From NCBI GenBank assembly GCA_965112735.1, contig OZ218953.1:372001-436000 (forward strand): a stretch of 64,000 nt of DNA, written 5' to 3'. Positions within the stretch are counted from its first letter, which is position 1. The number at the start of each line of letters is the position of its first letter. Below are positions 5,407-36,351 of the stretch, in pieces. This DNA comes from Phaeosaccion multiseriatum. Lineage: Eukaryota; Protista; Ochrophyta, other classes. Below the pieces are notes generated by a model that did no database searches, was not told the origin of the DNA, and saw nothing but the letters and a program-made list of their open reading frames with translations. Position numbers and translations under genes: made by a program.

Positions 5407-8400
5407 CTAGCCCGCAGCCTTAGTATTAGTAGCCTTAGAAGCTTCAGCCTCAGCCGCCGCCTTGCCCACCCTGCTGCGGAGGGCCGTGATGAAGTTGTCG
5501 TCCTTCCTCTCGGGGAGGCGGCACTCATCGGGCGGCAGCAGGTCCAAAGCCCCGCACAGCAGCGTGAAGAAGGGCTCCTTGGTGCCCACGAGCATAACCA
5601 GCTTCTGCACATAGCGCGTCAGCTCCTGCTGCAGACGGGCCATCTGCGTGGCGTGAGCGATCATCTGGACGCCGCCCCCGAACTGGATCTTGCCCGTCTT
5701 GTTGTTGACACGCACGGTCGGGACGGACACCTGCAGAGCCGCGGGGCTGGCCAGGGCACTCACCGCCTAACAAAGCGTCAGTAGGGTGTGCGTATGTGTG
5801 TGTGTGCGTGTGTGTGCGTGTGCGTGTGTGCGTGTGTACATGTGTGTGCGTGCGTGTATGTGTGTGTCGCATCATCAGACAGGTCCAGCCAGGTAAGAGA
5901 GGTGGCCAAGATGCAGGGGGAAGAGGACAGAGAGCAGAGGACAGAGGACGGAGCGCAGAGGGTGGGGATCAACCTAAGAATTACGTATGTGTGTGTGTGA
6001 TGGGGCGGGGGAAATGGGTGGTGCAGGGACGCCCTCCGTCCTCGCCACAGCCTCACGGTAGGCGCCTCATGGCTGGTGTCTCATCATCGCTACTGCCTCT
6101 TCATCGTTACTGCCTGCGTGCAGAGCCTCACCTGAGTATTGGTGACCCCCTTGGGCAGGCTGGGCATGTGCTTCACAAGCTTTGTGTCAGTGTCCCGCAT
6201 CGCCGCTCTGTGGTAAGGAGAGGGGGAGAGAGGCGGAGAGGAGCAGACCCCACACCCACACCCACAGACAAGAGACAAAGGCAGTGCCAGAGACGTTGAG
6301 TCGTTGAGCGGACCTCTCACACAGTCCAAGCCAAACACAGCAGGCCAGGCACTAGCCGTAGCTGTATTCGCACGGGATGGAGAGAGTGCTTGCACCATCG
6401 CACTGTATCTGCACGCACGAGAGAGATTGCCGCGCAAGCTCCTGCCCCACCTGAGCTTCTTGTGTAAGCCGTCGAAGTCGGAGAGTGCCCAGAAGGTGCT
6501 TGCTCTGAAGAGGTGCCACTCGCTGTCAAGGCGGTACACAAGCTCGCCGCTGGAGCCGAAGTTGAAGAAGCCGCTCAGCTGTGCTCGTGCCAAGTGATGC
6601 AGGTGAGACGGAAAGAGAAGGGCAGTAAGACAGGGGCACGAGCAGGAAGAGGAGGGGGTGGGGGGCACGGCAGTCGATGGGGAGGCAGGAGACAAGGAGA
6701 AGGAGGCGCGGGGCGTGCGCAACGCGTGAAGGCTATCTCTTTATCCCTCTCTCTCTATATATATCCCTTCCTTTCTCTCTCTCTCCTCTGCCGTCTCACC
6801 TGCACACTGAGAACATCCCCCACTGCGCCATGTGCACCGATCCGGAGCAGCTTCCGCTCTGCACGGTCCGTCACCTGTCGAAGAAGGCAGGGGAAGGCAG
6901 CGGAAGGCAGCGGAAGGCAGCGGAAGGTCGGGCAACACAGGGGAAGCAAGGGGAAGCAAGGGGGGTGTGTAGGAAGTGATCAGTAGAGTTTCGAAGGGGA
7001 GATTCAGATCACACTTTTCCGTGTTGGGTGTCCTCACTGCCAATCGTCCAATCGGCTGGGAAGTACATTGCGCGTCGCCCTCTCCCGTGCGTACCTGCAG
7101 GAAGTCGAGGTCCTCTTCGCTGAGGCCCATCTCCACGATCATCATGTAGTCCGTGTAGCCCTGCCCAGTAAGTCACGCAAGGTGAGGTGCGAGTTAGTCA
7201 GAGAGTGAGTGAGTGAGTGAGAGAGAGAGAGAGAAGAGAGAGAGGGCGGACTAGACAGGACTTATAACGTGACGCACCTTCTCTTCGAAGCGAGTGGCCA
7301 AGTGCCCTAGGCCCAGCGATTCGAGCCACTCGTCCACCCCCGTGTTGGTGCGGAAGGGCAGGCCGCTCCCTCCGAGGCTCAGTGCGCGGTCCACCTGGTG
7401 TCAGGACATAGGAGGGGGGAGGGGGGAGAGGAGGAGGGGGGAGAGGAGGAGGGAGGAGGGAGGAGGGAGGAGGGACGGGGTATGGGGGAGGGAGGAGGGG
7501 TGAGGAGGGAGGACGGAGGAAGGCCAACACAGGACGCGGGGAGTCGGTTCGTCAGTGCGTCAGTGCGACAGGAGGGGGCATCTAGAAGCTCCGAAGGCGG
7601 TCCATACTCTCTCCCCTCCCTAGCCTCCCTTGTTTCCTCCCTCCTGTGTCCATACCCCCCGTCCTCGGTCTCTGTTGGTCCTCCTCTGCCCATACCGTCC
7701 ACCCCTCTGCCCTGCCTGCAATGCCTCCCCTCCCTGACTCCAAGCTTCCAGCGTTTGTTGCCAGCTCTCCTCACCTGCCCTGTCTGTCCCCGCAGCCTGC
7801 GTGTGCCCGACCGGTGCCCCCCTCCTCCTCCTCCTCCTCCTGCTCCTGCTGTCGACGGAGACGCTGCTGACGCTGACGCCGCTCCTCCCCGTGATGAAGC
7901 ATCCTTGTCTACCGCCCTCTCTGGCGACGGTGAACGCACCCCTCCCTCCTGCTGCTGTATCACCAACTGCTGCTGCTCCTGTTGGCTCATTCGCCTGCGT
8001 CCCAGGTGGGCGTCTTTTCGCGCCTGCTGCTTGCGGGCGAAGTCGTGTTCGTCGGCAGCATCAATCGCACTTTGTATCGCCTTTCGAATGGAGGGGAGGA
8101 GAGGGAGGGGAGGGAAGCTAGGGCAGTGAGGAGGGAGCAATATGCGGCAGGGAAGAGAGATGGATGGATGAAGTGAGAGTGAGGTGAAAGCAGGGGACGC
8201 AGAGAAGAGAGAGCACTCCCGCCCTGTCCTGTTATCTGAGGCAGCATAGAGAACAGAGACAGACGTGCAGACGTACGTACGCACGCACGCACCTTGAGCC
8301 AAGCCTCCATGTTTTGTGGGTCCGTTCCGCTGAGTTCTCTGTTGTAATCCTCCTGTACCGCCGAGCTGTCCGCGCTGAGGATCTTCCAGCGCAGGTACAA

Positions 8401-14500: not shown

Positions 14501-15542
14501 TCTTCTTCTTCTTCTTCTTCTTCTTCTTCTGCTTCTGCTTCTGCTTCTGCTTCTGCTTGTTCTTCTTTAGATGCATGACCTACCTCCGTCTGGCACTGAC
14601 CCGCTGGAGCCTTGCATCCTTCGAGCGGGAGCAGGGGGAGGTGGCGGCCTATCTGGAGAAGAACATTGTGGACGCTGATGCGAGTGTGAGAGCAGAGGCC
14701 AGGAAGACCTTTTGGATCTTCTCGAGGCGCTGCCCTGACCTTGGGGACGGGGTGTTGAATAGACTCGACCCGGCCTCGCAGCGCCACTGTTTGAAGGAGG
14801 AGAGGACTTTCGATGTGGAGGCGGAGTTTTTGGAGGTGGAGTTGGAGCGCATGGCAAGTGATGGGGGAGGGAGGAGGGAAGGGCGAGGGCGAGGACAAGG
14901 GCAAGGGCAAGGGTCAGACGAGACGGAAGGGGCACAGGAGGAGGCTGAGCAGGAGGAGGCCGTGGCGTTTGGGGTGGGGGGGGGGTTGCACAGCGCGCCG
15001 CAAAAGGGGGACAGGAGAGGGCAGAGGGGGATGGCAGTGGATGACGGCAGGGCGGCAGACGGCAGGGAGGATAACGACAGGGGGGTGGGAGGCAGAGGAG
15101 GAGGAGGAGTATGGGCGGGAGGAGGCGCGTCGTCGTCTGCTGCTGCGTATCACCACCACATGCACACAACGCACCACGCGGGGGCGACTGTGAGGGCGGA
15201 CAGAGGCGAGGCTCGACAGGCGCTCTCGTCGAGGACCATGCCTCTGCGCGTGCAGCTCCACCCGCAGGTGAGGGGTGCAGTGAGGCGTGAGGGAGGGAGG
15301 GAGGGAGGGAGGGGCCAGGTGGTGATCTGCCGCCCGCCGGCCAAGCGAAGGGGAGAAGCGGATGGCCTCAACCACGCACACACACAAACACACACCTAAT
15401 ACGTTCCTTCTCTTCCCGTCCCGTTCCACACACATATACATATATACATATATAATATATATATATATTATATATATATATTGTATATGTACACAGACAA
15501 TGCCCCACGTGTACGAGGGGGAAGAGCAGCAGCAGTCATATG

Positions 15543-19767: not shown

Positions 19768-22221
19768 TCACTTTGGGGTTATCAAGTTGTTGGCGACCTT
19801 AGACACGAGCTCTGCCATTCGCTTGGAGTAGCCCCACTCGTTGTCGTACCTGACGACGCAGAAACCATCACACGCACGCACACGCACATACATACACCGA
19901 GGTCAGGCTCGTTGCTGTGCACGCAGTGAGGAACGGGGGCTGGATAGATAGATTAACAGAGAGGCCAGAGAGCTGAAACTGCGGGTAGTCACTATCGTAT
20001 TGTCGTACCAGATGTAGAGCTTGACCATGGTGCCGTCGATGACCATGGTGCAGAGAGAGTCCACGATACCTGCGCACGCCCATCGGTTGGGGGGGGGAGG
20101 AGGAGGAGGGGTTAAGACCTTCCGGACCTTCCGGGTATTGGGCAAGGCAGTGAGGCAGTGAGGACAGACTCAGAGGTGCGACGATCGCTTCCACGCATCC
20201 CGCCCTTTTATCTCTGGGCCCCTAAGCCCCCCCCCACTCTGGGTAAAGGAGGCATCCCAGCCCAGTGATGAACGAGTGAGAGTGGCGGTGACACCTCCCT
20301 TCCCTCGCTGTGAGAGTGGCAATGGACACTTCTTCCCTTCCCTCGCGCACTCACCGCTCCGCTCGTCGTTGGTGTAATCTCCAGACACAAGGGGCCTGGT
20401 CTCGTACCCCAGGATGCCCTTGAGGGGGCCCTCCTTGCTCGCTGCCTCCAGCAACCTATGGCCCAGGTGAGTTGGAGGGTGGGAGCGTGGGAGGCGGGAC
20501 GGGGAAAGGGAAAGCACCACAGAGGGAGTACAAGGGAGATTGGGAGATATATCAGCACGGCACTCCTTCCATCCCGTCTGACGCTCAGCACCTCATCAGG
20601 GCAATAAGTCAGCGAATTGTGGGAGATGGGCGCGACTCACCCGTTGACCTCCTCCTTGGTGGTGGGCCTGCCGACCTCGAACACAGCGTCAGTGATGGAC
20701 CCATTCATGAGCGGCACTCGAATCGCCATGCCTGAAAACCAGCATGCACACACAAGCAGAGACGTTAGGACGGCCTCACTACGAGCCGAAAGTGCGCACA
20801 GAGAGAAAAGAGAGGGAGAGGCATCAGTCAAACGCTGCACAGAGGTGTCAGGACAGACTGGATAGGACGGGTGTCAGGACTCACCGTTGAGCTTTCCCTT
20901 GAGCTCAGGGAATATGTTGGTGATGGCGGTGGCCGATCCCGTGGAGGTGGGAGCAAGGTTGGTCACTCCGGAGCGACACCTAAGGAGAGTAGTCGACGGA
21001 TGGCAGCGGATGGGGTAGTGGAAATAGAAAACAAGAGAGAGGTGCAAGGTCAGTGATCGACAGTGAGGGAGAGACGAGAGACGAGAGGCAGGTAGAGAGA
21101 GAAGCGCTGCTGTCCTGACACCAACGAGGCACCCACCTCCTGAGGTCCTTTTTCTTGGTCATGGGCATGTCAATGATGGGCTGCGTGCCCGTGGCGTTGT
21201 GTACAGTGGTCATGCAGCCGTGCGTGATGCCCAGCTGCTCGTGCACCACCTACTTTCCGTAATATGGAATATAGAGAAACGGCAGGAGAAAGGGTGTGAG
21301 GATAAACTGAATAGACAGTGTGTTCGAGTTAGTGGTGGACCACCTCATTGGTCGGGGCGCTGAATGAGAAACTAAATACATCGCCAATGAGCGTGTTAGC
21401 ACCGCACCACACACCTTGACCACCGGGGCCAGGCAGTTGGTGGTGCAGCTGGCGGCAGTGCAGATGAGGTGTTCGTCGGCCAGGAGGTTGTCGTTGACGC
21501 CCATGACCACGTTGAGTACGCCATCCTCCTTGACGGGGGCAGACACCACCACGCGCTCCACGCCCGCGGTCAGGTAGGGCTGCAGAGCCTCCTTGGAGAG
21601 GAACTTGCCCGTGCAGCAGCACACCACATCGCACTGGTGGGGAGGGGGGGGAGGGAGAGAGGAATTCGGTTGTTTACGAATGAGCAGATCTATCTTGGAG
21701 CAAGAGGGAGACACACACTACCGGAGCTCCCGAACCGTGAGAGAAACGACACCCCCCGTCCACCTCAACAAGCAGGGAAGCAAAGCGAAAGTGCCCGACG
21801 ACAGACGACCCAACCCACCTTCTCGCCCCATGCCACGTCCTCGAGCTGCTCGCTGCAGGAGAAAGTCACCCTTTTCCCGTCGATGACGAGGGCATCACCG
21901 TCGGCCTGCACGTCCTGGCCCTGCTGCCAGGTGCCGTGGATGGAGTCGAACTTGAGCAGGTAGGCGGCCGTCTCCGCTCCACCGACCAGCTCATTGATAT
22001 GCACAATCTCTGCAAGCAGGATAAATTGAACAGAAGGGAGTGAGAGGGGTGTGAGATGGTGCAGAGGGAGAAGAGAAGGGAGGCCGAGGCAGCATGGCTT
22101 TCATGGGACTGGGAGCGACGGCGTTCCAAAACCACTCACCGCAAGAGGGGTCTTGCCACAGCAGGCGAAAGAGGCATCTGCCGATCCTGCCAAACCCGTT
22201 GATAGCAACCTTGACAGTCAT
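19768..22221 (-). CDS. gapdh: ArsJ-associated-type glyceraldehyde-3-phosphate dehydrogenase (9 exons, no targeting peptide)
   Basis: Spliced protein: [15 protein letters not shown]...[23 protein letters not shown]...[18 protein letters not shown]...[23 protein letters not shown]...KDLRR...[23 protein letters not shown]...[16 protein letters not shown]...[21 protein letters not shown]...[12 protein letters not shown]. INExxGG, SAPVKE, TGSATAI and GYExRPLVSxDY match the bacterial arsJ-linked GAPDH clade as I recall it. Confidence 0.92.
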
Positions 22222-22676
22222 GCCGTGCTTAAGCGGTGTCGGTGCTATGTTATATGCAAACACTGTGTATGGTGGTGCGTTTGCATCCTTGGCTTACGAG
22301 GCGAATGTTCCTTTGGCGGCAAAACCATCTCACTTGATTTTAGTATGGAAGGGCATGAAACCCCCCCGGGATAAAATATTTGTCCTACTGCCGAGAGAGG
22401 ACTGACATATAAATCTCAGCTCAGGCCCCTTCTCCTCCCTCCAGATAGCTGAAGAGCACAGGCTCTGGTCCTGCTCTTCCTGCTTTCCTACCGCTGCTGC
22501 TGCTGCTACTGCTGGCGGCGCACCTTCGCAGGGGAAGAATCCCCCCCGGCGAAAACACCTTCCACACAAACGGACAAGAATCTGGGGTGCGTTCCACAAC
22601 AGGCGGTGGAGGAGAGAAGCAAGCAAGCACTTTGAGCAGGGAGCAGCGCAAAGGAGAAGGGGGGCGACGAGATAGC
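22222..22676. promoter_or_regulatory. Bidirectional promoter / 5' UTR region shared by gapdh and arsJ
   Basis: 455 bp between the two divergent ATGs; contains two similar GAAWCCCCCCCGG...AAAA elements at about 22357 and 22537. Confidence 0.6.
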
Positions 22677-23529
22677 ATGGGGCCGACGGTGGAGGAGGCC
22701 GTCCCTGCCCCTGCTGCTGCGGCTGTCCCTCCCGTCGCCATCAGCAAGGCCTCCACCTCCAAGCCTCCCGCCCCCATGCACAACCTCTACACCGCAGTCA
22801 TGGGCTACAATGTCTACACCATCACGGACGGCGCTCTTCGCCTCATCGTGCTGCTTCACGCGGATAGCCTGGGTTTCAAGTGAGTTGCGCGAGAAAGGCT
22901 TCCGTAGAAGGGAGGTTGAGGGGAAGCACCTAGTAACTGTAGGCCAGTCGATGCAGCCAAACTCCATCCGTTCAGACTTTGGAGCCTGTGTTTCGGTGGA
23001 GGCCCATGGAGACTTCCCCTGAAGCTAACTCAAAGTCCCCTTTCTATCCCTCCTCTCTCTCTCTCCGCCTGTTACCATTTCTCACTCTCCGCCGTGCTTT
23101 GCTGTGGGCAGCGCCATCGAGATCGCCTTCATGTTCTCCATGTACGAGATTGCGGGGATCTTTACAAACTTATTCGGAGGTAAGGATCCGTGGGGTGGGG
23201 ATGAGTGCAGCGCAGCTCATCCTCACCTCCCTCTCTCCCTCTGCTCTTGCACCCACCTCACCTTCTCCCCCCCCCCCTCCTCTCTACTGCTGCGCTCTCC
23301 TCAGGCGTGGTGGGGTCTATGAAGGGTCTGCGCTTCACCCTCATAGCCTCCTTGCTGCTGCAGATGGTGACTCTGGGGGGCCTCATGCTCACTGACACGG
23401 TGTTCGGCGATCTCGAAGATGCGCGAGGGCAGACGAGGCTCCAGGCCACGGTGTACATCACTGCGTGGCAGGCGCTGGCGGTAAGAACTGACGAAGTGTG
23501 AGATGTGGTTGAGAGTGTGGTTGCGTGCT

Positions 23530-23562
<33 letters not shown>

Positions 23563-26529
23563 TTGTCTCTTCTCCCCCCGCGACATGGCGGAGCTCCAGT
23601 TTTCAAGGCAACGCTCTCTTCGCCTCCTGCCTGCATGCCTGCCTGTCTGCCTACCTGTCTGCCTGACTGACTGACTCCGGGAGTATGAGCGCCCATCCCA
23701 TTCCATCCCTCCTGTCGACAATACCTCCTTGTCAGTGTACCTCTGCATGTTAGTGCCTCATCACTCACTCCACTCAATGGCCCACGCACCCACACACACA
23801 CACGCACCCACACACGCACCCACACGCGTACCCACGCAGGGGGTGGCCAAGGACTTTATGAAACTGACGGGCAAGGGCACGCCCAAGCTCGTGAGCAAGG
23901 AGGGGGACGAGACGAGGCTCTTCCAGCTCGTGGCCTGGCTCACGGGGATGAAGGTGGGTGTGCCCGTATGCCCCACATCTGTCTTCGTCTGTCTTCGTCT
24001 GTCTACCGTACCCCCCCCTCCTCTTGTCTCCCTCTCTGTCTCTCTTGTCTACCTTTGTGCTCTCTGCCATCCGAGGCCCACTGCCCACTGCCCCGCGACA
24101 CACCCTCGTGAAGGCCACCGCAGCAAAGAGCGGCGCTGACCGACTCGCCCCTCCCTTCCCTCCCCACTCTCCCCTCCCCTCCCCTCCCCTCCCCTCCCCT
24201 CCCCTCCTTGTGCGCTGACTGAACCACTGTCCCAGAACGCTCTCAAGGGCCTTGGGCACTTCCTGGGGTCGCTGCTTGTATTCACCATCGGTTATACCTT
24301 CAGCCTACTCGTGCTGCTCCTCATGTGCGCCCTCTTCACCCCCGTGGGCTACTTCTACATGGACAAGGGACTGGGCAAGTCCGTCGTCAAAGAGGTGGAC
24401 TGGTACGGAGTGTTCCACAAACCACGGAACTTTAACTTGCTCTCCCTCGCCAGGTTCTTCTTGTTCTGCAGGTAAGACTTTACTATGTTAGGTGTGTTCT
24501 TACGTATGCAGGAAAGTACGTAAGTACGTCAGTGTGTGCATATGTGCCGAGGGTTTGAGGGTTGTCGTCCGCCCCCTGACCGGCACCTCTCAGCTGGTCC
24601 CCACCCGCCCCCCCTGAAGACTGTTTCTCGTCTGCGCCTGCGCCTCTCTCTCGCCTGCCTCTCTGCCTCTCTTCCTCCCTCTTTCTCTCCTCTCTCTCTT
24701 CTCCTCTTTCTCTCTTCCCCTCTGCCTCTCTCTCTCGTCCACCTCTATGCCTTCCTGCCTCCCTGCTCCTCGCCCCCCCCCCCCCCCTTTCAGCCGTGAC
24801 GTGTGGTTCGAGATCGCCCTCCCCCTCTTCATCAAGAATCAGCTCGAATGGAACGCCGTGCTCGTGGGGCTCTTCATGGCCGGGTACATCGTCGCCTATG
24901 GAAACCTGCAGGTCAGTAAGTCAGTGGGCAGATCAGTCGAGATCAGTGGGCTGTTGGGAGGTTCCTCCTGTTGAAATGTCGCATCTATGGCCTGGTGAGC
25001 CCCCCCTGTCGGGCGCTTGTTGGACGATCAGATCTGACGCACATTTCTCATGCATCTCCTCTCTCCTCGCTCTCCTCTCTCTCCTCTCTCTCCTCTCTCC
25101 TCTCTCTCCCATCTCCCCTCTCTCCCCTCTCTCCTCTGTGTGGCGTTTGGCGTGTGGGCAGGCCATGTCAACAAAGCTGTACAAGAAGAAGGACGGAGGC
25201 GCCCTTGGGCACCCCACCGTCCCATGTATCTGGAAGTGGGCCGCCGCGTGCTCTCTCGGTGAGTGACAAGAGCAAGAGCCATCGTACTTTTCTCTTCACG
25301 TACCCACCGCATGTAGTGCCATCTACACGCATCCACCGCCTTACACATCCCTTCTCTCTGTCCCTCTCTCCCTCTCTCCCTCGTGGCTCCTTCTTCTCCT
25401 CCTCCTCCTCCTCCTCCTCCTCCTCCTTGCAGTCCCCCTGCTACAGGGTACTTTTATGTACCTGTCCTTCTCTGTGTGGGACAGCGTGCCCGCCACGGCG
25501 GTGTTCCTCATCCTCGGCTTGGCGGCCTTCGCAGGTACAGAGCACAAAGAGCATAGCATGCAAGCGCTACACTGACTCGCTAGCTCTCTTGACTTCTGAG
25601 CTCGTAGCTTCATCGTCTACCCAACCTAGAGCCCTCTGCCGTGCTGCAAGCACTCTCTCTGAGCCCTCATCTTTCCTCTCCCCTTTTCCCACTGTCCATA
25701 CGCCTTTCGTTGTCTCTTGTCGGTTGTCCTCACCCTCTTTTTCCTTGACTGGCTGCTTTGCTTGCCGTTGGTTGGCCCTCCCCCCACCATGCCATCGGAG
25801 CAGGCCTGTTCGCGGTGAACTCAGCGTGTCACTCGTACTTCGTTGTGTCATTCAGCAACAAGGACAAGGTGGCGCAAGACCTCGGGGTAAGTCAATGAGG
25901 AACCCAACGCACGCACACGTATACACATACACACGCACACACAAAAGCTCTCTCTCTAAAATCTCGTTGCAGATATCAACCCCTCCCTCTGTTTGGGTCT
26001 CTGCTTTGCTCATCGAAGCAACATCCAGCCCTGCCCCTCCCCCCCTCCTCCCCTAAGGAACTCCGTCGCTCCTCCTTGTTCTCTGACCGCTGCCCCGCTA
26101 ACCCACACTGCCTCACTGCCATCTGTGTCCCTCCCTCCGTATCACCAGTTCTACTATATGGCCAACGCCGGGGGGCGTCTGGGGGGCACCCTGCTGGGCG
26201 GAGTGGTGTACTTCCACACGTCCGACGACTTCGGAATGAGCATGAATCTTTGGCTCGCTGTCCCCTTCCTCGTGCTGGCGGCGCTCGTTGCTGCGCTGCT
26301 CGGGAGGGAAGATGCGGCCAGGGTGAAGGGGGGCGGATCAGCAGCAGTTGGTGATACAGTAGCAGTGGCGGGGCAAGGGCTAGAGAAGGGCTGCGTGGGG
26401 CAAGAGAGGGATGTGGAGGGGGGCGCTCTGTCATCGAAGGAGCTGAGGGAGCAGGAGGCACACGCACAGCAGCCACGGGAACAGCCGTCTTCACTCACAT
26501 CCACAGTAGACGCATTTGCACCAGCTTAG
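22677..26529 (+). CDS. arsJ: ArsJ-family organoarsenical efflux MFS permease (10 exons)
   Basis: Spliced protein has ArsJ signatures: YTITDGALRLIVLLH, FSMYEIAGIFTNLFGG, QALA|GVAKDFMK, VAWLTGMK|NALKGLGHFLG, LSLARFFLFCS|RDVWFEIALP, LFAVNSACHSY, DLG|FYYMANAGGRLGGTLL. All nine introns are GT-AG and frame-consistent. Confidence 0.92.
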
Positions 26530-27449: not shown

Positions 27450-28215
27450 TCAGGAGTCGTCAACGGAATGCACGATGGGCAAGTAGTGCGTCATGGTGCC
27501 GCAGTCAGGGGGCTGCAGGAAGGTGTGGAACACCACGGAAGTATCCTCCACTATGCACAGGATGCACCGCTCAGGCGACACCGTGCCTGGCCAGTGGGAA
27601 GGGGACGAAGGAGAGGAGAAGAGTTCAGAGGCCACTCCGTGGCATGGGGCAGAGGGGTGCTTAAGTGGGCAGCGGGGTGGAGGGGCTCAAGGAAGAGTAG
27701 GCAGACAGGTAGGTAGGCACACACGTGGGCCGGCAGGTAGGCAGGCAGGCAAAAAACCCTAAGGCGGGTCGCCTCTTCCCCCCCTGGATCGCCCCCCCGG
27801 GACCGTACGTACCGTAAAGGTGCAGCACGCTGGCGAGCTTGCGTCCCTCTACACACACGCTCGTCTTGTTGTTCTTAGAGGCTGCCTCCGAGGGCATGGC
27901 CTCAAAGCGAGGCGTGAGGTTGTTGTAGTACGTCTTGACGGTGGAGTCCGACGTCTCTACTCTTAACACGAGCTGTCCGTCCATGCCGGCGTCGATGTTG
28001 AGATACTTTTCGATGAGTTTGAGACGGTCCACCACCTGCCGAATGGAGCGGTTGCGGGGCAGCTCCAGCTAAAGAGGGAGGGGATGGGAAAGGGGGAAGG
28101 AGGGAGGGAGGGTGGGGGGATGGCAAAGGAGCGAAGGATACGGACACCGAAAGAGGTTGCAGGGTAGGGTATGTGCAACGAGACTGCCCAGCGCAGGGTG
28201 GGGTGCGGGAGAGGG

Positions 28216-29859: not shown

Positions 29860-30830
29860 TTGACGACATTTGAGGCTCGGTGAACCAGTCTGAACGCACC
29901 CGAGAACGTCTTTGGCTGAGCACCACAGCACGCTACTATGGGACGCTGTAGGGCACGCGAAGCCAGGCGTAGCACGTAGATCCAGAGCCCCGCACCAACT
30001 TCACTCTCCCGCGCTTTTTTGGGGGGGCACAACTCCACCCCCCGGACGGGCAGCTTCCGCAGAAGAGGACCCTTGGCTTCGGAGGCTGAAGCTCTTGGAC
30101 CCATGGCTTCGGAGGCTGAAGCTCTTGAAGGAAGCCTTGAGCTTCAGGTGAGGAGGACATGGAACTGCTCAAAGAGAACATGAGCAGAACGTATTCGGGG
30201 GATGATATCGTCCTTCGATGGGAAGGGTCTGCGGTCTCTGGCTTCACAAAGCCAGAGAAGCCCTTCCCAACACTATGATTGCATGATCCACGTGCTTCTC
30301 TGGCTTTGTGAAGCCTGCAACCGCAGACCCTTCCCATCAAAGCCCCCCGCACTCGTTCCACTCCCTTTCTCTTTGAGCTCTTCTAGGTCCTCCAAAAAGG
30401 GAGAAGCCGCATCGTGGTTGCCTTGAAGCTCAAGGCTTGCTTCAAGAGCTTCATCCTCCGAAGCCATGGGTCCTCTTCTGCTGAAGCTGTCCGTGCGATC
30501 GGCCCCTAAAAATTCTGGATTCCGGATTCTGATGGCCTCTGCAGGGCGGCTTCCGGATTCTGGTGGCCTCTGCAGGGCGGATTCCGGATTCTGTGCACCC
30601 CCCCCTCAGAATCCCGTCAGGAGCCGAGTGCGGGGCCGGGGGGTGGAGTTGTGCCGCAAAAAAAAGCGCGGGAGACAGAAGAGGAGGCGTTGGTGCAGGG
30701 CTCTGGATCTACTCGCTGCGCCTGGCTTCACGTGCCCTACAGCGGCCCGTAGTAGCGTGCTGTGGTGCTCAGCCAAGACGTTCTCGGGTGCGTTCAGACT
30801 GGTTCGCCGAGCCTCAAAGGTCGTCAACGA
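29860..30830. mobile_element. ~1-kb imperfect inverted repeat (foldback element), with CGTCAAA repeats extending to about 31030
   Basis: 29860-30000 is the reverse complement of about 30690-30828; 30050-30148 matches 30421-30494; 30217-30261 matches 30294-30339; central loop about 30262-30293. Confidence 0.75.
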
Positions 30831-34390: not shown

Positions 34391-36351
34391 ATGGCTTCTC
34401 CCTCTTCTGTTAACAAGACCGCTGCTGCGGCATGGGGTATTCTCGACGCCGTGCTGGGGAGCAAAGAACTTTGGGGTGTGAGCAGGGTGCTCGATGCGAT
34501 GACCTCACGCACTCTGGTGCTGAATGCTGCCGTGCCATATCATGTCCTGCAGCAAATGCTTGGTCTACTCCGGTGGCAGCAGCAGGAAGAGGATAGGGAG
34601 ACTCGTGCTGTGCCTTTGGCTGGGCTCTCCGTTGGCAGCGGAGAGGGAGTGGGAAGCTTGGGGGTCGAAAACCGAGACGGAGCAAACGGAGATGCTGCAA
34701 ACAGAGACGCACGTTCCGCGTCGCAGCTGTGCACCTGGGCCCCTCCAGGAGGTGTCCCACACGTGCAGAGTTTGCTGAGAAAGCTCTCGTCACGAAAACG
34801 TTGGCGCTGTTACCGGCATCGGTCAAGCGTGTGGTCTTCTCCACCTATTACAATCAGGCCGACATTTCTCTACCTGCCACAGTGGAGGAGGTGCAAATGG
34901 GGCGTGGGTTTAATCTCCCTCTTGGCCTGCCTGCCTCGCTGAAGAAGATCACATTTGGCTTATGCTTCAATCAGCACGTGGTCCTTCCTGGCGGTGTGGA
35001 GGAGGTGGAGATGGGGGATGCCTTTAACCTCCCTCTTGACCTGCCTGCCTCGCTGAAGAAGATCAGATTTGGCAATCGCTTCAATCGGCACATGGTCCTC
35101 CCTTGTGCCGTGGAGGAGGTGGACATGGGGTGTGACTTTAATCTACCTCTGGGCCTCCCCTTGTCGCTGAAGAAGATCAGATTTGCTGAGTCCTCGAAGT
35201 TCAATCAACACTTGGTCCTTCCTTCTGGTGTGGAGGAAGTGGAGATGGGGAGTTACTTTGACCTCCCTCTTGACCTGCCTGCCTCGCTAAAGAAGATCCG
35301 ATTTGGCAAACCCTTCAATCAGCACGTGGTCCTCCCTTTGTCGCTGAAGAAGATCAGATTTGCTGGGTCCTCGGAGTTCAATCAGCACTTGGTCCTTCCT
35401 TCTGGTGTGGAGGAGGTGGAGATGGGGCGGAACTTTAACCTCACTCTGGATCTGCCTGCTTCGCTGAAGAAGGTCAAATTGAGCTACAAGTTCAATCAGC
35501 ACATGGTTCTTCCTTGTGGTGTGGAGGAGGTGGAGGTTGGGAAGCACTGTAACCTCCCTCTCATCCTCCCCGCCTCGGTGAAGAAGATCAAGTTTCATGA
35601 GGACTCAAGGTTCAGTCAGCACTTGGTACTTCCTAGTGGTGTGGAGGAGGTGCAGATGGGGCGTGTATTTAACCTCCCTCTGGATCTGCCTGCCTCGCTG
35701 AGGAAGATCAAATTCGCTTGGAGCTCCAAGTTCAATCAGCAAGACGTGGTCCTTCCGTATGGTGTGGAGGAGGTTGAGATGGGGGATAAATTTAATTTCC
35801 CTCTGGATCTGCCTACCTCGCTGAAGAAGGTCAAATTTGGCGACAATTTCAATCAGCATGTGGTACTTCCTCTCGGCGTGGAGGAGGTGGAGATGGGCTA
35901 TCGCTTCAAACTCCCTCTGGCCCTGCCTGCGTCAGTGAGAAAGATCATATTCGCTCCGCGTGCCAAGTTCAATCAGCACATAGTCCTCCCTCACGGTGTA
36001 GAGGAGGTAAACTTTGGGGGAAACGACATTACCGGCATTTATGATGGGGGAAATAGTACGGGCCGTTTTAATCTCCCTCTGGACCTGCCTACCTCGCTGA
36101 AGAAGATCACATTTGGATGTTTCTTCAACCACCATGTGGTTCTTCCTTCCGGTGTGGAGGAGGTGGTGATGGGACCTCACTTCAATCTCCCTCTGGAGCT
36201 GCCTGCTTCTTTGCGGACTCTTGAGCTGGGACCGAATTACACCTACCCTCTGGAGAGCCTGCCTGCTGGCCTGAGGAGGCTTAGAGTTGGGTTTGAGTGC
36301 CCATTACCTACAGCACTACCTGAGGGGCTTAAGGTGGATTATGTCTGGTAG
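34391..36351 (+). CDS. FNIP-type leucine-rich repeat protein; repeat region intronless, N-terminal junction unresolved
   Basis: About 24 repeats alternating FNQHxVLPxGVEEVxMG and FNLPLDLPASLKKIxF in ORF 34729-36351. The upstream ORF from ATG 34391 is in another frame, so an intron or frameshift is needed. Confidence 0.8.

Follow-up and report, generated by a model that had tools for sequence, protein, structure and literature searches.

Why would an alga keep a glyceraldehyde-3-phosphate dehydrogenase (GAPDH) gene and a permease gene of the major facilitator superfamily (MFS) side by side and in opposite orientations, when the same two families are known as neighbors in bacterial ars operons? 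This question is raised by a 64,000-nucleotide stretch of DNA (hereafter the window) from Phaeosaccion multiseriatum, an ochrophyte allied to the brown algae, to Chrysoparadoxa and to xanthophytes (assembly GCA_965112735.1, contig OZ218953.1, positions 372,001 to 436,000 of the forward strand). A first-pass annotation, made from the letters without database searches, had read the two genes as a gapdh-arsJ module acquired from bacteria. The explanation that we favor, with a probability of about 70%, is that they form a nuclear, intron-bearing two-gene cassette for arsenate detoxification.

A spliced GAPDH gene and a spliced permease gene lie head to head

Both gene models were rebuilt from the raw sequence, giving a 9-exon GAPDH gene on the minus strand and a 10-exon MFS permease gene on the plus strand, whose ATG codons face away from each other across 455 bp and whose joined exons (19 in total) make up two intact reading frames:

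19768..22221, minus strand: GAPDH gene of the 'GAPDH3' type; 9 exons and 8 introns; coding sequence of 1035 nucleotides (nt), 344 amino acids (aa)
22221-22140, 22009-21819, 21633-21415, 21249-21137, 20979-20885, 20731-20641, 20455-20355, 20069-20009, 19849-19768, minus strand: exons of the GAPDH gene
22222..22676, no strand: intergenic spacer between the divergent start codons, 455 bp
22677..26529, plus strand: ArsJ-like MFS permease gene; 10 exons and 9 introns; coding sequence of 1578 nt, 525 aa
22677-22879, 23112-23179, 23305-23480, 23840-23953, 24236-24471, 24794-24911, 25162-25258, 25433-25534, 25804-25886, 26149-26529, plus strand: exons of the permease gene

All 17 introns have GT...AG ends and they are 125-359 nt long, while the GC content of the pair (0.58-0.59) falls within the range of the window (0.54-0.64) and the genes on either side are eukaryotic. 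Bacterial contamination as the source of the pair is excluded by these introns, the base composition and the flanking genes. The first-pass annotation, which had described two spliced eukaryotic genes between CLASP and HUS1, was accurate on this point, as it was on coordinates, exon counts, the 455-bp spacer, both neighbors (confirmed by Pfam matches) and the permease motifs that it quoted.

Most introns of both genes contain long CT-rich and CA-rich tracts, and permease introns 3 and 4 carry microsatellites of the (GATT)n and (CCCCT)n types at 23531-23563 and 24160-24207.

The permease is related to ArsJ

The window proteins were profiled as in-frame exon pieces, through their full-length relatives, and whole with locally built hidden Markov models (HMMs) and BLAST; a representative protein search seeded with the 78-aa piece of permease exon 5 returned 67 matches, which were used to seed later searches. 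Seven of the ten permease exon pieces matched NF033734 (MFS_ArsJ), the NCBIfam model for organoarsenical efflux MFS transporters, and no other notable family. The matching pieces are strictly collinear, cover profile positions 7-390 and add up to ~222 bits. Full-length close relatives of the permease also match this model only, at 355-383 bits, which is slightly below its equivalog cut-off of 400 bits. On an HMM that we built from 80 bacterial ArsJ proteins, the whole window permease scored 361.5 bits, compared with 650-710 bits for bacterial ArsJ, which puts it level with relatives whose NF033734 scores are ~355-363.

Once spliced, the permease keeps all the signature motifs of ArsJ (TDGALR, GVAKD..K, LTGxKNALKG, RDVWF, AVNSxxHSY and GFYYMANA.GRL), and 98 of the 139 columns (71%) that are invariant in 22 bacterial ArsJ are identical in it, most of the changes being conservative. 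Its identity to bacterial ArsJ is 40-47%, and it exceeds the bacterial core by ~33 residues at the N terminus and ~80 at the C terminus. The nearest permeases, at ~59-64% identity, are those of the brown algae Scytosiphon, Nemacystus, Cladosiphon and Ascophyllum, of Chrysoparadoxa australica and of Tribonema minus, and the homologue from Ectocarpus siliculosus is 57.5% identical. The PDB contains no structure of the ArsJ family. Since ArsJ is the only family matched, since the matches are collinear and since most of the residues invariant in bacteria are kept, these comparisons support the view that the permease is an ArsJ homologue. The first-pass annotation had gone one step further and called it ArsJ; homology and motifs bear it out, but the scores of the relatives stay under the cut-off and the clade lies outside bacterial ArsJ (see below).

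The GAPDH is of the ArsJ-associated type

Summed over its exon pieces, the window GAPDH reached ~332 bits on NF033735 (G3PDH_Arsen, the NCBIfam model of ArsJ-associated GAPDHs, with a cut-off of 450 bits), 314 bits on PRK08955 and 242 bits on TIGR01534, the generic type I model, and NF033735 was the best model for 5 of 8 pieces. Full-length relatives that are 71-73% identical to the window GAPDH score 483-493 bits on NF033735, above the cut-off. On our own HMM of bacterial ArsJ-linked GAPDHs, the window protein obtains 492 bits and its relatives 492-508, compared with 320 for Escherichia coli GapA and Epd. With these relatives and this HMM as a proxy, the whole window GAPDH very probably passes the NF033735 cut-off. 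It is 51-65% identical to bacterial arsJ-adjacent GAPDHs, versus 40% for GapA and 39% for Epd of E. coli, and its nearest relatives (71-73%) come from Ectocarpus, Ascophyllum and Tribonema.

The models of housekeeping enzymes gave a very different picture: the same relatives score 255-277 bits on PRK15425 (GapA/GapC-type, cut-off 662) and 307-329 bits on PRK07403 (the cyanobacterial/plastid type, Gap2/GapA-B, cut-off 616), and among PDB chains those of chloroplast GapA/B and cytosolic GapC reach ~266-278 bits, below the ~318 bits of Bacillus-/Thermotoga-type chains. A canonical GapC or plastid GapA/B identity is thus ruled out by profile scores and identities. These data, with which the tree described below agrees, support the assignment of the window GAPDH to the ArsJ-associated type, as the first-pass annotation had proposed; since that tree had E. 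coli GapA and Epd as its only housekeeping GAPDHs, the case against GapC and GapA/B rests on the profile scores. The active site is intact, with the cysteine of SCTTNC, the histidine of TTVH, GFGRIGR and phosphate-site residues that align with those of E. coli GapA, and so is the cofactor site. The protein has no N-terminal presequence and is therefore probably cytosolic.

A probable ancient descent from a bacterial gapdh-arsJ module

The ArsJ tree (careful search) comprised 56 rows, 27 for bacterial ArsJ and 29 for eukaryotic sequences, and a branch with 100/100 support separates the bacteria from all the eukaryotes, which stand outside the sampled bacterial radiation as its sister group. On the eukaryotic side are the window permease, other ochrophytes, labyrinthulids, a MAST, diatoms and the green alga Ulva, together with hemichordates, chytrid and glomeromycete fungi, Corallochytrium, a dictyostelid and a colponemid. 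Within this assemblage, the window permease groups in a clade of 100/99 support with Chrysoparadoxa, the two Tribonema paralogues, an uncultured eukaryote known from a metagenomic contig (L006) and brown algae. The GAPDH tree (quick search; 88 rows, including 36 bacterial ArsJ-linked GAPDHs) unites all eukaryotes, namely ochrophytes, diatoms, a haptophyte, cryptophytes and Chlorokybus, in one clade with an SH-aLRT value of 91, or 97 without Chlorokybus. This clade neighbors the bacterial ArsJ-linked GAPDHs and is distant from GapA and Epd, both of which are on very long branches. These trees support a descent of both genes from a bacterial gapdh-arsJ module by a transfer that would be ancient, because each gene falls in a broad clade made up of eukaryotes only, and not by an event in this alga. 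Thus, of the acquisition proposed in the first-pass annotation, the bacterial ancestry finds support and the lineage-specific event does not.

The opposite scenario would have this lineage acquire a bacterial gapdh-arsJ operon by recent horizontal transfer, followed by rapid intron gain and an inversion. It would fit the tight co-directional operons of the bacterial relatives and the scarcity of intron positions common to the window genes and their relatives, none of the 9 in the permease gene being shared and 1-2 of the 8 in the GAPDH gene. We nevertheless consider it very improbable: it is contradicted by the trees, in which both proteins are nested in eukaryote-only clades; both are most similar to proteins of brown algae, Chrysoparadoxa and Tribonema (63-73% identity) and less so to those of bacteria (40-47% for the permease and 51-65% for the GAPDH); and the base composition is that of the surrounding genome. 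Moreover, a three-residue insertion (seen in Phaeodactylum as PNTKKSDLRR) is common to the four eukaryotic GAPDHs that we aligned (from the window, the L006 eukaryote, Tribonema and Phaeodactylum) and absent from the three aligned bacterial ArsJ-linked GAPDHs, and the phase 0 GAPDH intron at APVVK|V has an exact match in Tribonema.

Exon mapping of annotated relatives, from which this match was obtained, showed that a second GAPDH intron, after exon 1, nearly coincides with that of a relative, and that none of the nine permease introns is exactly matched, several being 1-3 codons away from introns in other lineages. The numbers of introns in GAPDH and permease are 8 and 9 in the window, 7 and 7 in Tribonema, and 2 and 0 in the L006 eukaryote. 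Since so few positions are common to relatives, all 17 introns appear to have been gained since the bacterial ancestor, most of them in a lineage-specific manner, and the positions held in common give a weak signal of old residence. The near misses among the permease introns of ochrophyte lineages, for example after LGF, NLFG, LTGMK and DLG, could be due to the sliding of introns or to recurrent insertion at favored sites.

The eukaryotic ArsJ-like clade also reaches well beyond algae. The permeases of Saccoglossus (P0098/L093), Ptychodera (P0032), fungi (P0147, P0343 and P0347), the holozoan Corallochytrium (P0005) and the dictyostelid Synstelium (P0045) all fall inside it, and the Saccoglossus gene is essentially intronless, with no GAPDH gene within 10 kb. 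Diatom ArsJ-like proteins (P0329 from Fragilariopsis and MMETSP relatives) group at 100/100 with the branch of Ulva and hemichordates and not with other stramenopiles, which suggests either old paralogy or eukaryote-to-eukaryote transfer.

The divergent pair recurs in other genomes

In bacteria, a GAPDH gene lies immediately upstream of arsJ on the same strand in 76 of 80 ArsJ loci, so that the first-pass annotation was right to contrast co-directional operons with the divergent pair of the window. Two other eukaryotes have the divergent arrangement: Tribonema minus carries a head-to-head GAPDH/ArsJ-like pair (locus L007, P0185/P0079) with ~190 bp between annotated gene ends, and the L006 contig (JGI 3300068088, P0076) carries one with 385 bp between the ATGs. 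The flanking genes differ among the three loci and only the pair itself is conserved. Considering the bacterial loci together with these two ochrophyte-type genomes, whose flanks are different, the adjacency in the window is not due to chance. In Tribonema gayanum, the ortholog of the paired permease is transcribed, P0079 having a nearly identical sister sequence there in the Trinity transcript P0075. Relative to the Tribonema L007 and L006 pairs, the window pair has the same divergent orientation, a similarly short spacer and a place in the same clades of both trees, whereas intron content is sharply different and flanking genes are unrelated.

The spacer at 22222..22676 is presumed to hold a shared bidirectional promoter and the 5' untranslated regions of both genes. 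The three divergent-pair spacers displayed no conserved motif, the longest k-mer common to them being of 8 nt, which is at chance level.

Tribonema minus has a second, looser cluster (L003, JAFCMP010000112.1, 1-24416), in which a GAPDH gene is followed by an unassigned gene, then by a gene for arsenite efflux of the ACR3 family and finally by an ArsJ-like paralogue (P0068). This paralogue is ~9 kb from its GAPDH, and the ACR3 gene between them matches TIGR00832 with 194 and 91 bits on two exon pieces. The cluster, which could be called a eukaryotic 'ars island', thereby ties the ArsJ-like family to arsenic independently. An ACR3-like gene was also looked for in the 64-kb window, and none was found. 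Our literature searches returned no paper describing the L007 or L006 pairs, whose genes are annotated as 'hypothetical' or 'putative membrane transporter', and no mention of the L003 cluster.

Taking these loci together, it is possible, if still tentative, that the head-to-head pair is an ancestral cassette of the brown-algal/xanthophyte lineage, held since before the divergence of these classes by selection for co-regulation from one bidirectional promoter, split or lost repeatedly (as in brown algae and Chrysoparadoxa), and grown in Tribonema into an 'ars island' with ACR3. If so, the green-algal finding described below would extend to stramenopiles and the pair would rank with the oldest linkages of two genes of bacterial origin that eukaryotes have retained. 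The divergent pair may have come by direct descent from an operon or by later reassembly. The first-pass annotation had favored an operon rearranged with its linkage kept, which is plausible but has to be set against the separation of the two genes in 7 of the 10 eukaryotic genomes or contigs inspected.

Two further loci were recorded during this survey. The metagenome-assembled genome of a Filomicrobium sp. (NZGY01000106.1, L014 1894-4251) has one 785-aa open reading frame over the GAPDH and ArsJ regions, which is either a natural GAPDH-ArsJ fusion or the result of a stop codon lost by assembly error. On the L006 contig, a gene of the purine-nucleoside-phosphorylase family (PNP_UDP_1) lies at 6915-7664, ~750 bp past the end of the GAPDH gene, perhaps by coincidence.

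A candidate arsenate-detoxification cassette

What could such a pair do? In the arsenate-detoxification cassette that we propose, the cytosolic GAPDH paralogue would use arsenate in place of phosphate on glyceraldehyde-3-phosphate and release 1-arseno-3-phosphoglycerate; the ArsJ-like permease would then transport this unstable compound through a membrane, the probable destination being the cell exterior, where hydrolysis would follow. Such a route would need no reduction of arsenate to arsenite, and divergent transcription from the 455-bp spacer would allow the two genes to be co-regulated. Because marine algae import arsenate via phosphate transporters, the pair may matter for arsenic cycling where phosphate is scarce. 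The usefulness under phosphate scarcity that the first-pass annotation had suggested is backed by data from bacteria, gap-arsJ of Nodularia being induced under phosphate limitation (PMC9846622), and by analogy the same may apply to the alga.

Several observations weigh against this proposal. Because the ArsJ scores are below the cut-off and the eukaryotic permeases form a clade apart from all sampled bacterial ArsJ, the substrate of these permeases could have shifted. The GAPDH and permease genes are not neighbors in Chrysoparadoxa, Ectocarpus, Scytosiphon, Phaeodactylum, Hondaea and Saccoglossus, and they are also unlinked in Fragilariopsis, where they are on different scaffolds, and in another metagenomic eukaryote; linkage is therefore not required for function. 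Two 30-nt exon-junction probes gave no match to spliced transcripts among metagenome and metatranscriptome contigs. Finally, a tblastn search with E. coli Pgk found no PGK-like gene in the 64-kb window (nothing better than E = 9); the same search found none at the other ochrophyte loci.

One could imagine that the adjacency is accidental or a relic, the two genes being uncoupled or one or both of them unexpressed. The absence of a transcript match for this species, the lack of linkage in most sampled eukaryotic genomes and the spacer without a conserved motif would all be expected in that case. It is quite unlikely, however, considering that both reading frames are intact over 19 exons with their catalytic and signature residues conserved, that Tribonema and L006 have the same head-to-head arrangement despite unrelated flanks, that the paired permease is transcribed in Tribonema gayanum, and that the same two families are neighbors in green algae (PMC7826186).

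Alternatively, the pair may serve carbon metabolism, with the GAPDH as an ordinary glycolytic or gluconeogenic isoenzyme, the permease as a transporter of an organic anion such as a phosphorylated three-carbon acid, and both co-regulated for central carbon flux. A fully canonical GAPDH active site would be consistent with this. So would the wide distribution of the GAPDH clade among diatoms, cryptophytes and haptophytes, where the gene often has no permease linked to it, and a eukaryotic permease clade of its own, 100/100 apart from bacterial ArsJ and below the equivalog cut-off. Foflonker and Blaby-Haas raised this very hypothesis and then rejected it (PMC7826186). Against it are the arsenate sensitivity of Chlamydomonas arsJ mutants (PMC7826186), the arsenite pump of the ACR3 type that separates the GAPDH from the ArsJ paralogue in the Tribonema cluster, and the retention of all motifs and of 71% of the bacterially invariant residues, so that we regard a role in carbon metabolism as unlikely.

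Relation to known systems

A role in arsenate detoxification would place the pair next to systems that are already known in eukaryotes. The first-pass annotation had left room for a first description there, but the arrangement has been published for green algae, which have a conserved neighborhood that combines an ArsJ-like transporter with a bacterial-type 'GAPDH3' and, as a rule, with a non-canonical PGK (Foflonker and Blaby-Haas, Mol Biol Evol 2021, PMC7826186). The same study proposed that the green-algal GAPDH and ArsJ were acquired jointly from bacteria, and reported that pgk3 insertion mutants of Chlamydomonas, like the arsJ ones, are arsenate-sensitive. In red algae (Cyanidiales), arsJ occurs alone and is monophyletic with green-plant and other eukaryotic sequences (PMC9812998). 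Our literature search found no mention of ArsJ in stramenopiles.

The window pair resembles the green-algal ArsJ-GAPDH3(-PGK3/4) system in that nuclear, spliced and adjoining genes encode an ArsJ-like permease together with a GAPDH of bacterial type that is neither GapC nor GapA/B, and in that the ArsJ-like protein of Ulva and the GAPDH of the streptophyte alga Chlorokybus are in the same eukaryotic clades as the window proteins. With Ulva and Chlorokybus standing in for Chlamydomonas, the orthology to Cre07.g354150 is indirect. The differences are that the host is an ochrophyte, hence a stramenopile, that the window pair is strictly head to head across its short spacer, and that the 64 kb hold no PGK gene, whereas PGK3/PGK4 is nearby in most, but not all, green algae.

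In bacteria, gapdh-arsJ pairs are usually under ArsR control. In Pseudomonas aeruginosa, GAPDH and ArsJ confer arsenate resistance (Chen, Yoshinaga, Garbinski and Rosen 2016, as cited in PMC7826186). The window pair is like the bacterial pairs of ars operons in both families, signature motifs, catalytic residues and tight linkage, and the chemistry is presumed, by analogy, to be the same, with 1-arseno-3-phosphoglycerate being formed and then exported. Unlike them, it is divergent and not co-directional, has 17 introns instead of none, and encodes a permease with N- and C-terminal extensions. The fern Pteris vittata has a comparable arsenate-tolerance pathway made of GAPC1 and OCT4 (Cai et al. 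2019, as cited in PMC7826186). As summarized there, its logic is analogous, in that arsenylation by a GAPDH is followed by removal of the product through a transporter, but it is convergent, relying on a plant GapC and on a transporter of the OCT4 family, which is not related to ArsJ, with no bacterial-type gene pair.

The pair would thus be a stramenopile example of the arsenite-independent arsenate detoxification known from bacteria and green algae, and it suggests a better name for brown-algal and xanthophyte genes that are labeled 'putative membrane transporter' or 'unnamed protein product'. No new question is opened, since the concept and its first genetic test were published in 2020-21. 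What is added, namely the recurrent bidirectional arrangement and the Tribonema ACR3 cluster, is of modest extra interest, since it offers a natural experiment, on a small scale, in the maintenance of linkage between operon-derived genes in eukaryotes.

Neighboring genes and other features of the window

Pfam matches identified the genes on either side of the pair:

14557-15396, plus strand: CLASP_N gene, upstream neighbor
27664-28035, minus strand: Hus1 gene, downstream neighbor

Other Pfam-supported genes elsewhere in the window encode FNIP-repeat, ZIP and PH-domain proteins. Downstream of HUS1, positions 29860-30827 form a nested, near-perfect inverted repeat of ~1 kb, with arms at ~29860-30261 and 30294-30827 that are 76-96% complementary around a center of 32 nt; it looks like a foldback or palindromic element. 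Further along, on the plus strand, 34729-36351 is a single open reading frame of 540 aa, nearly the whole length of which is made up of FNIP repeats (Pfam PF05725, 215 bits), a repeat type whose best-known sources are Dictyostelium and giant viruses.

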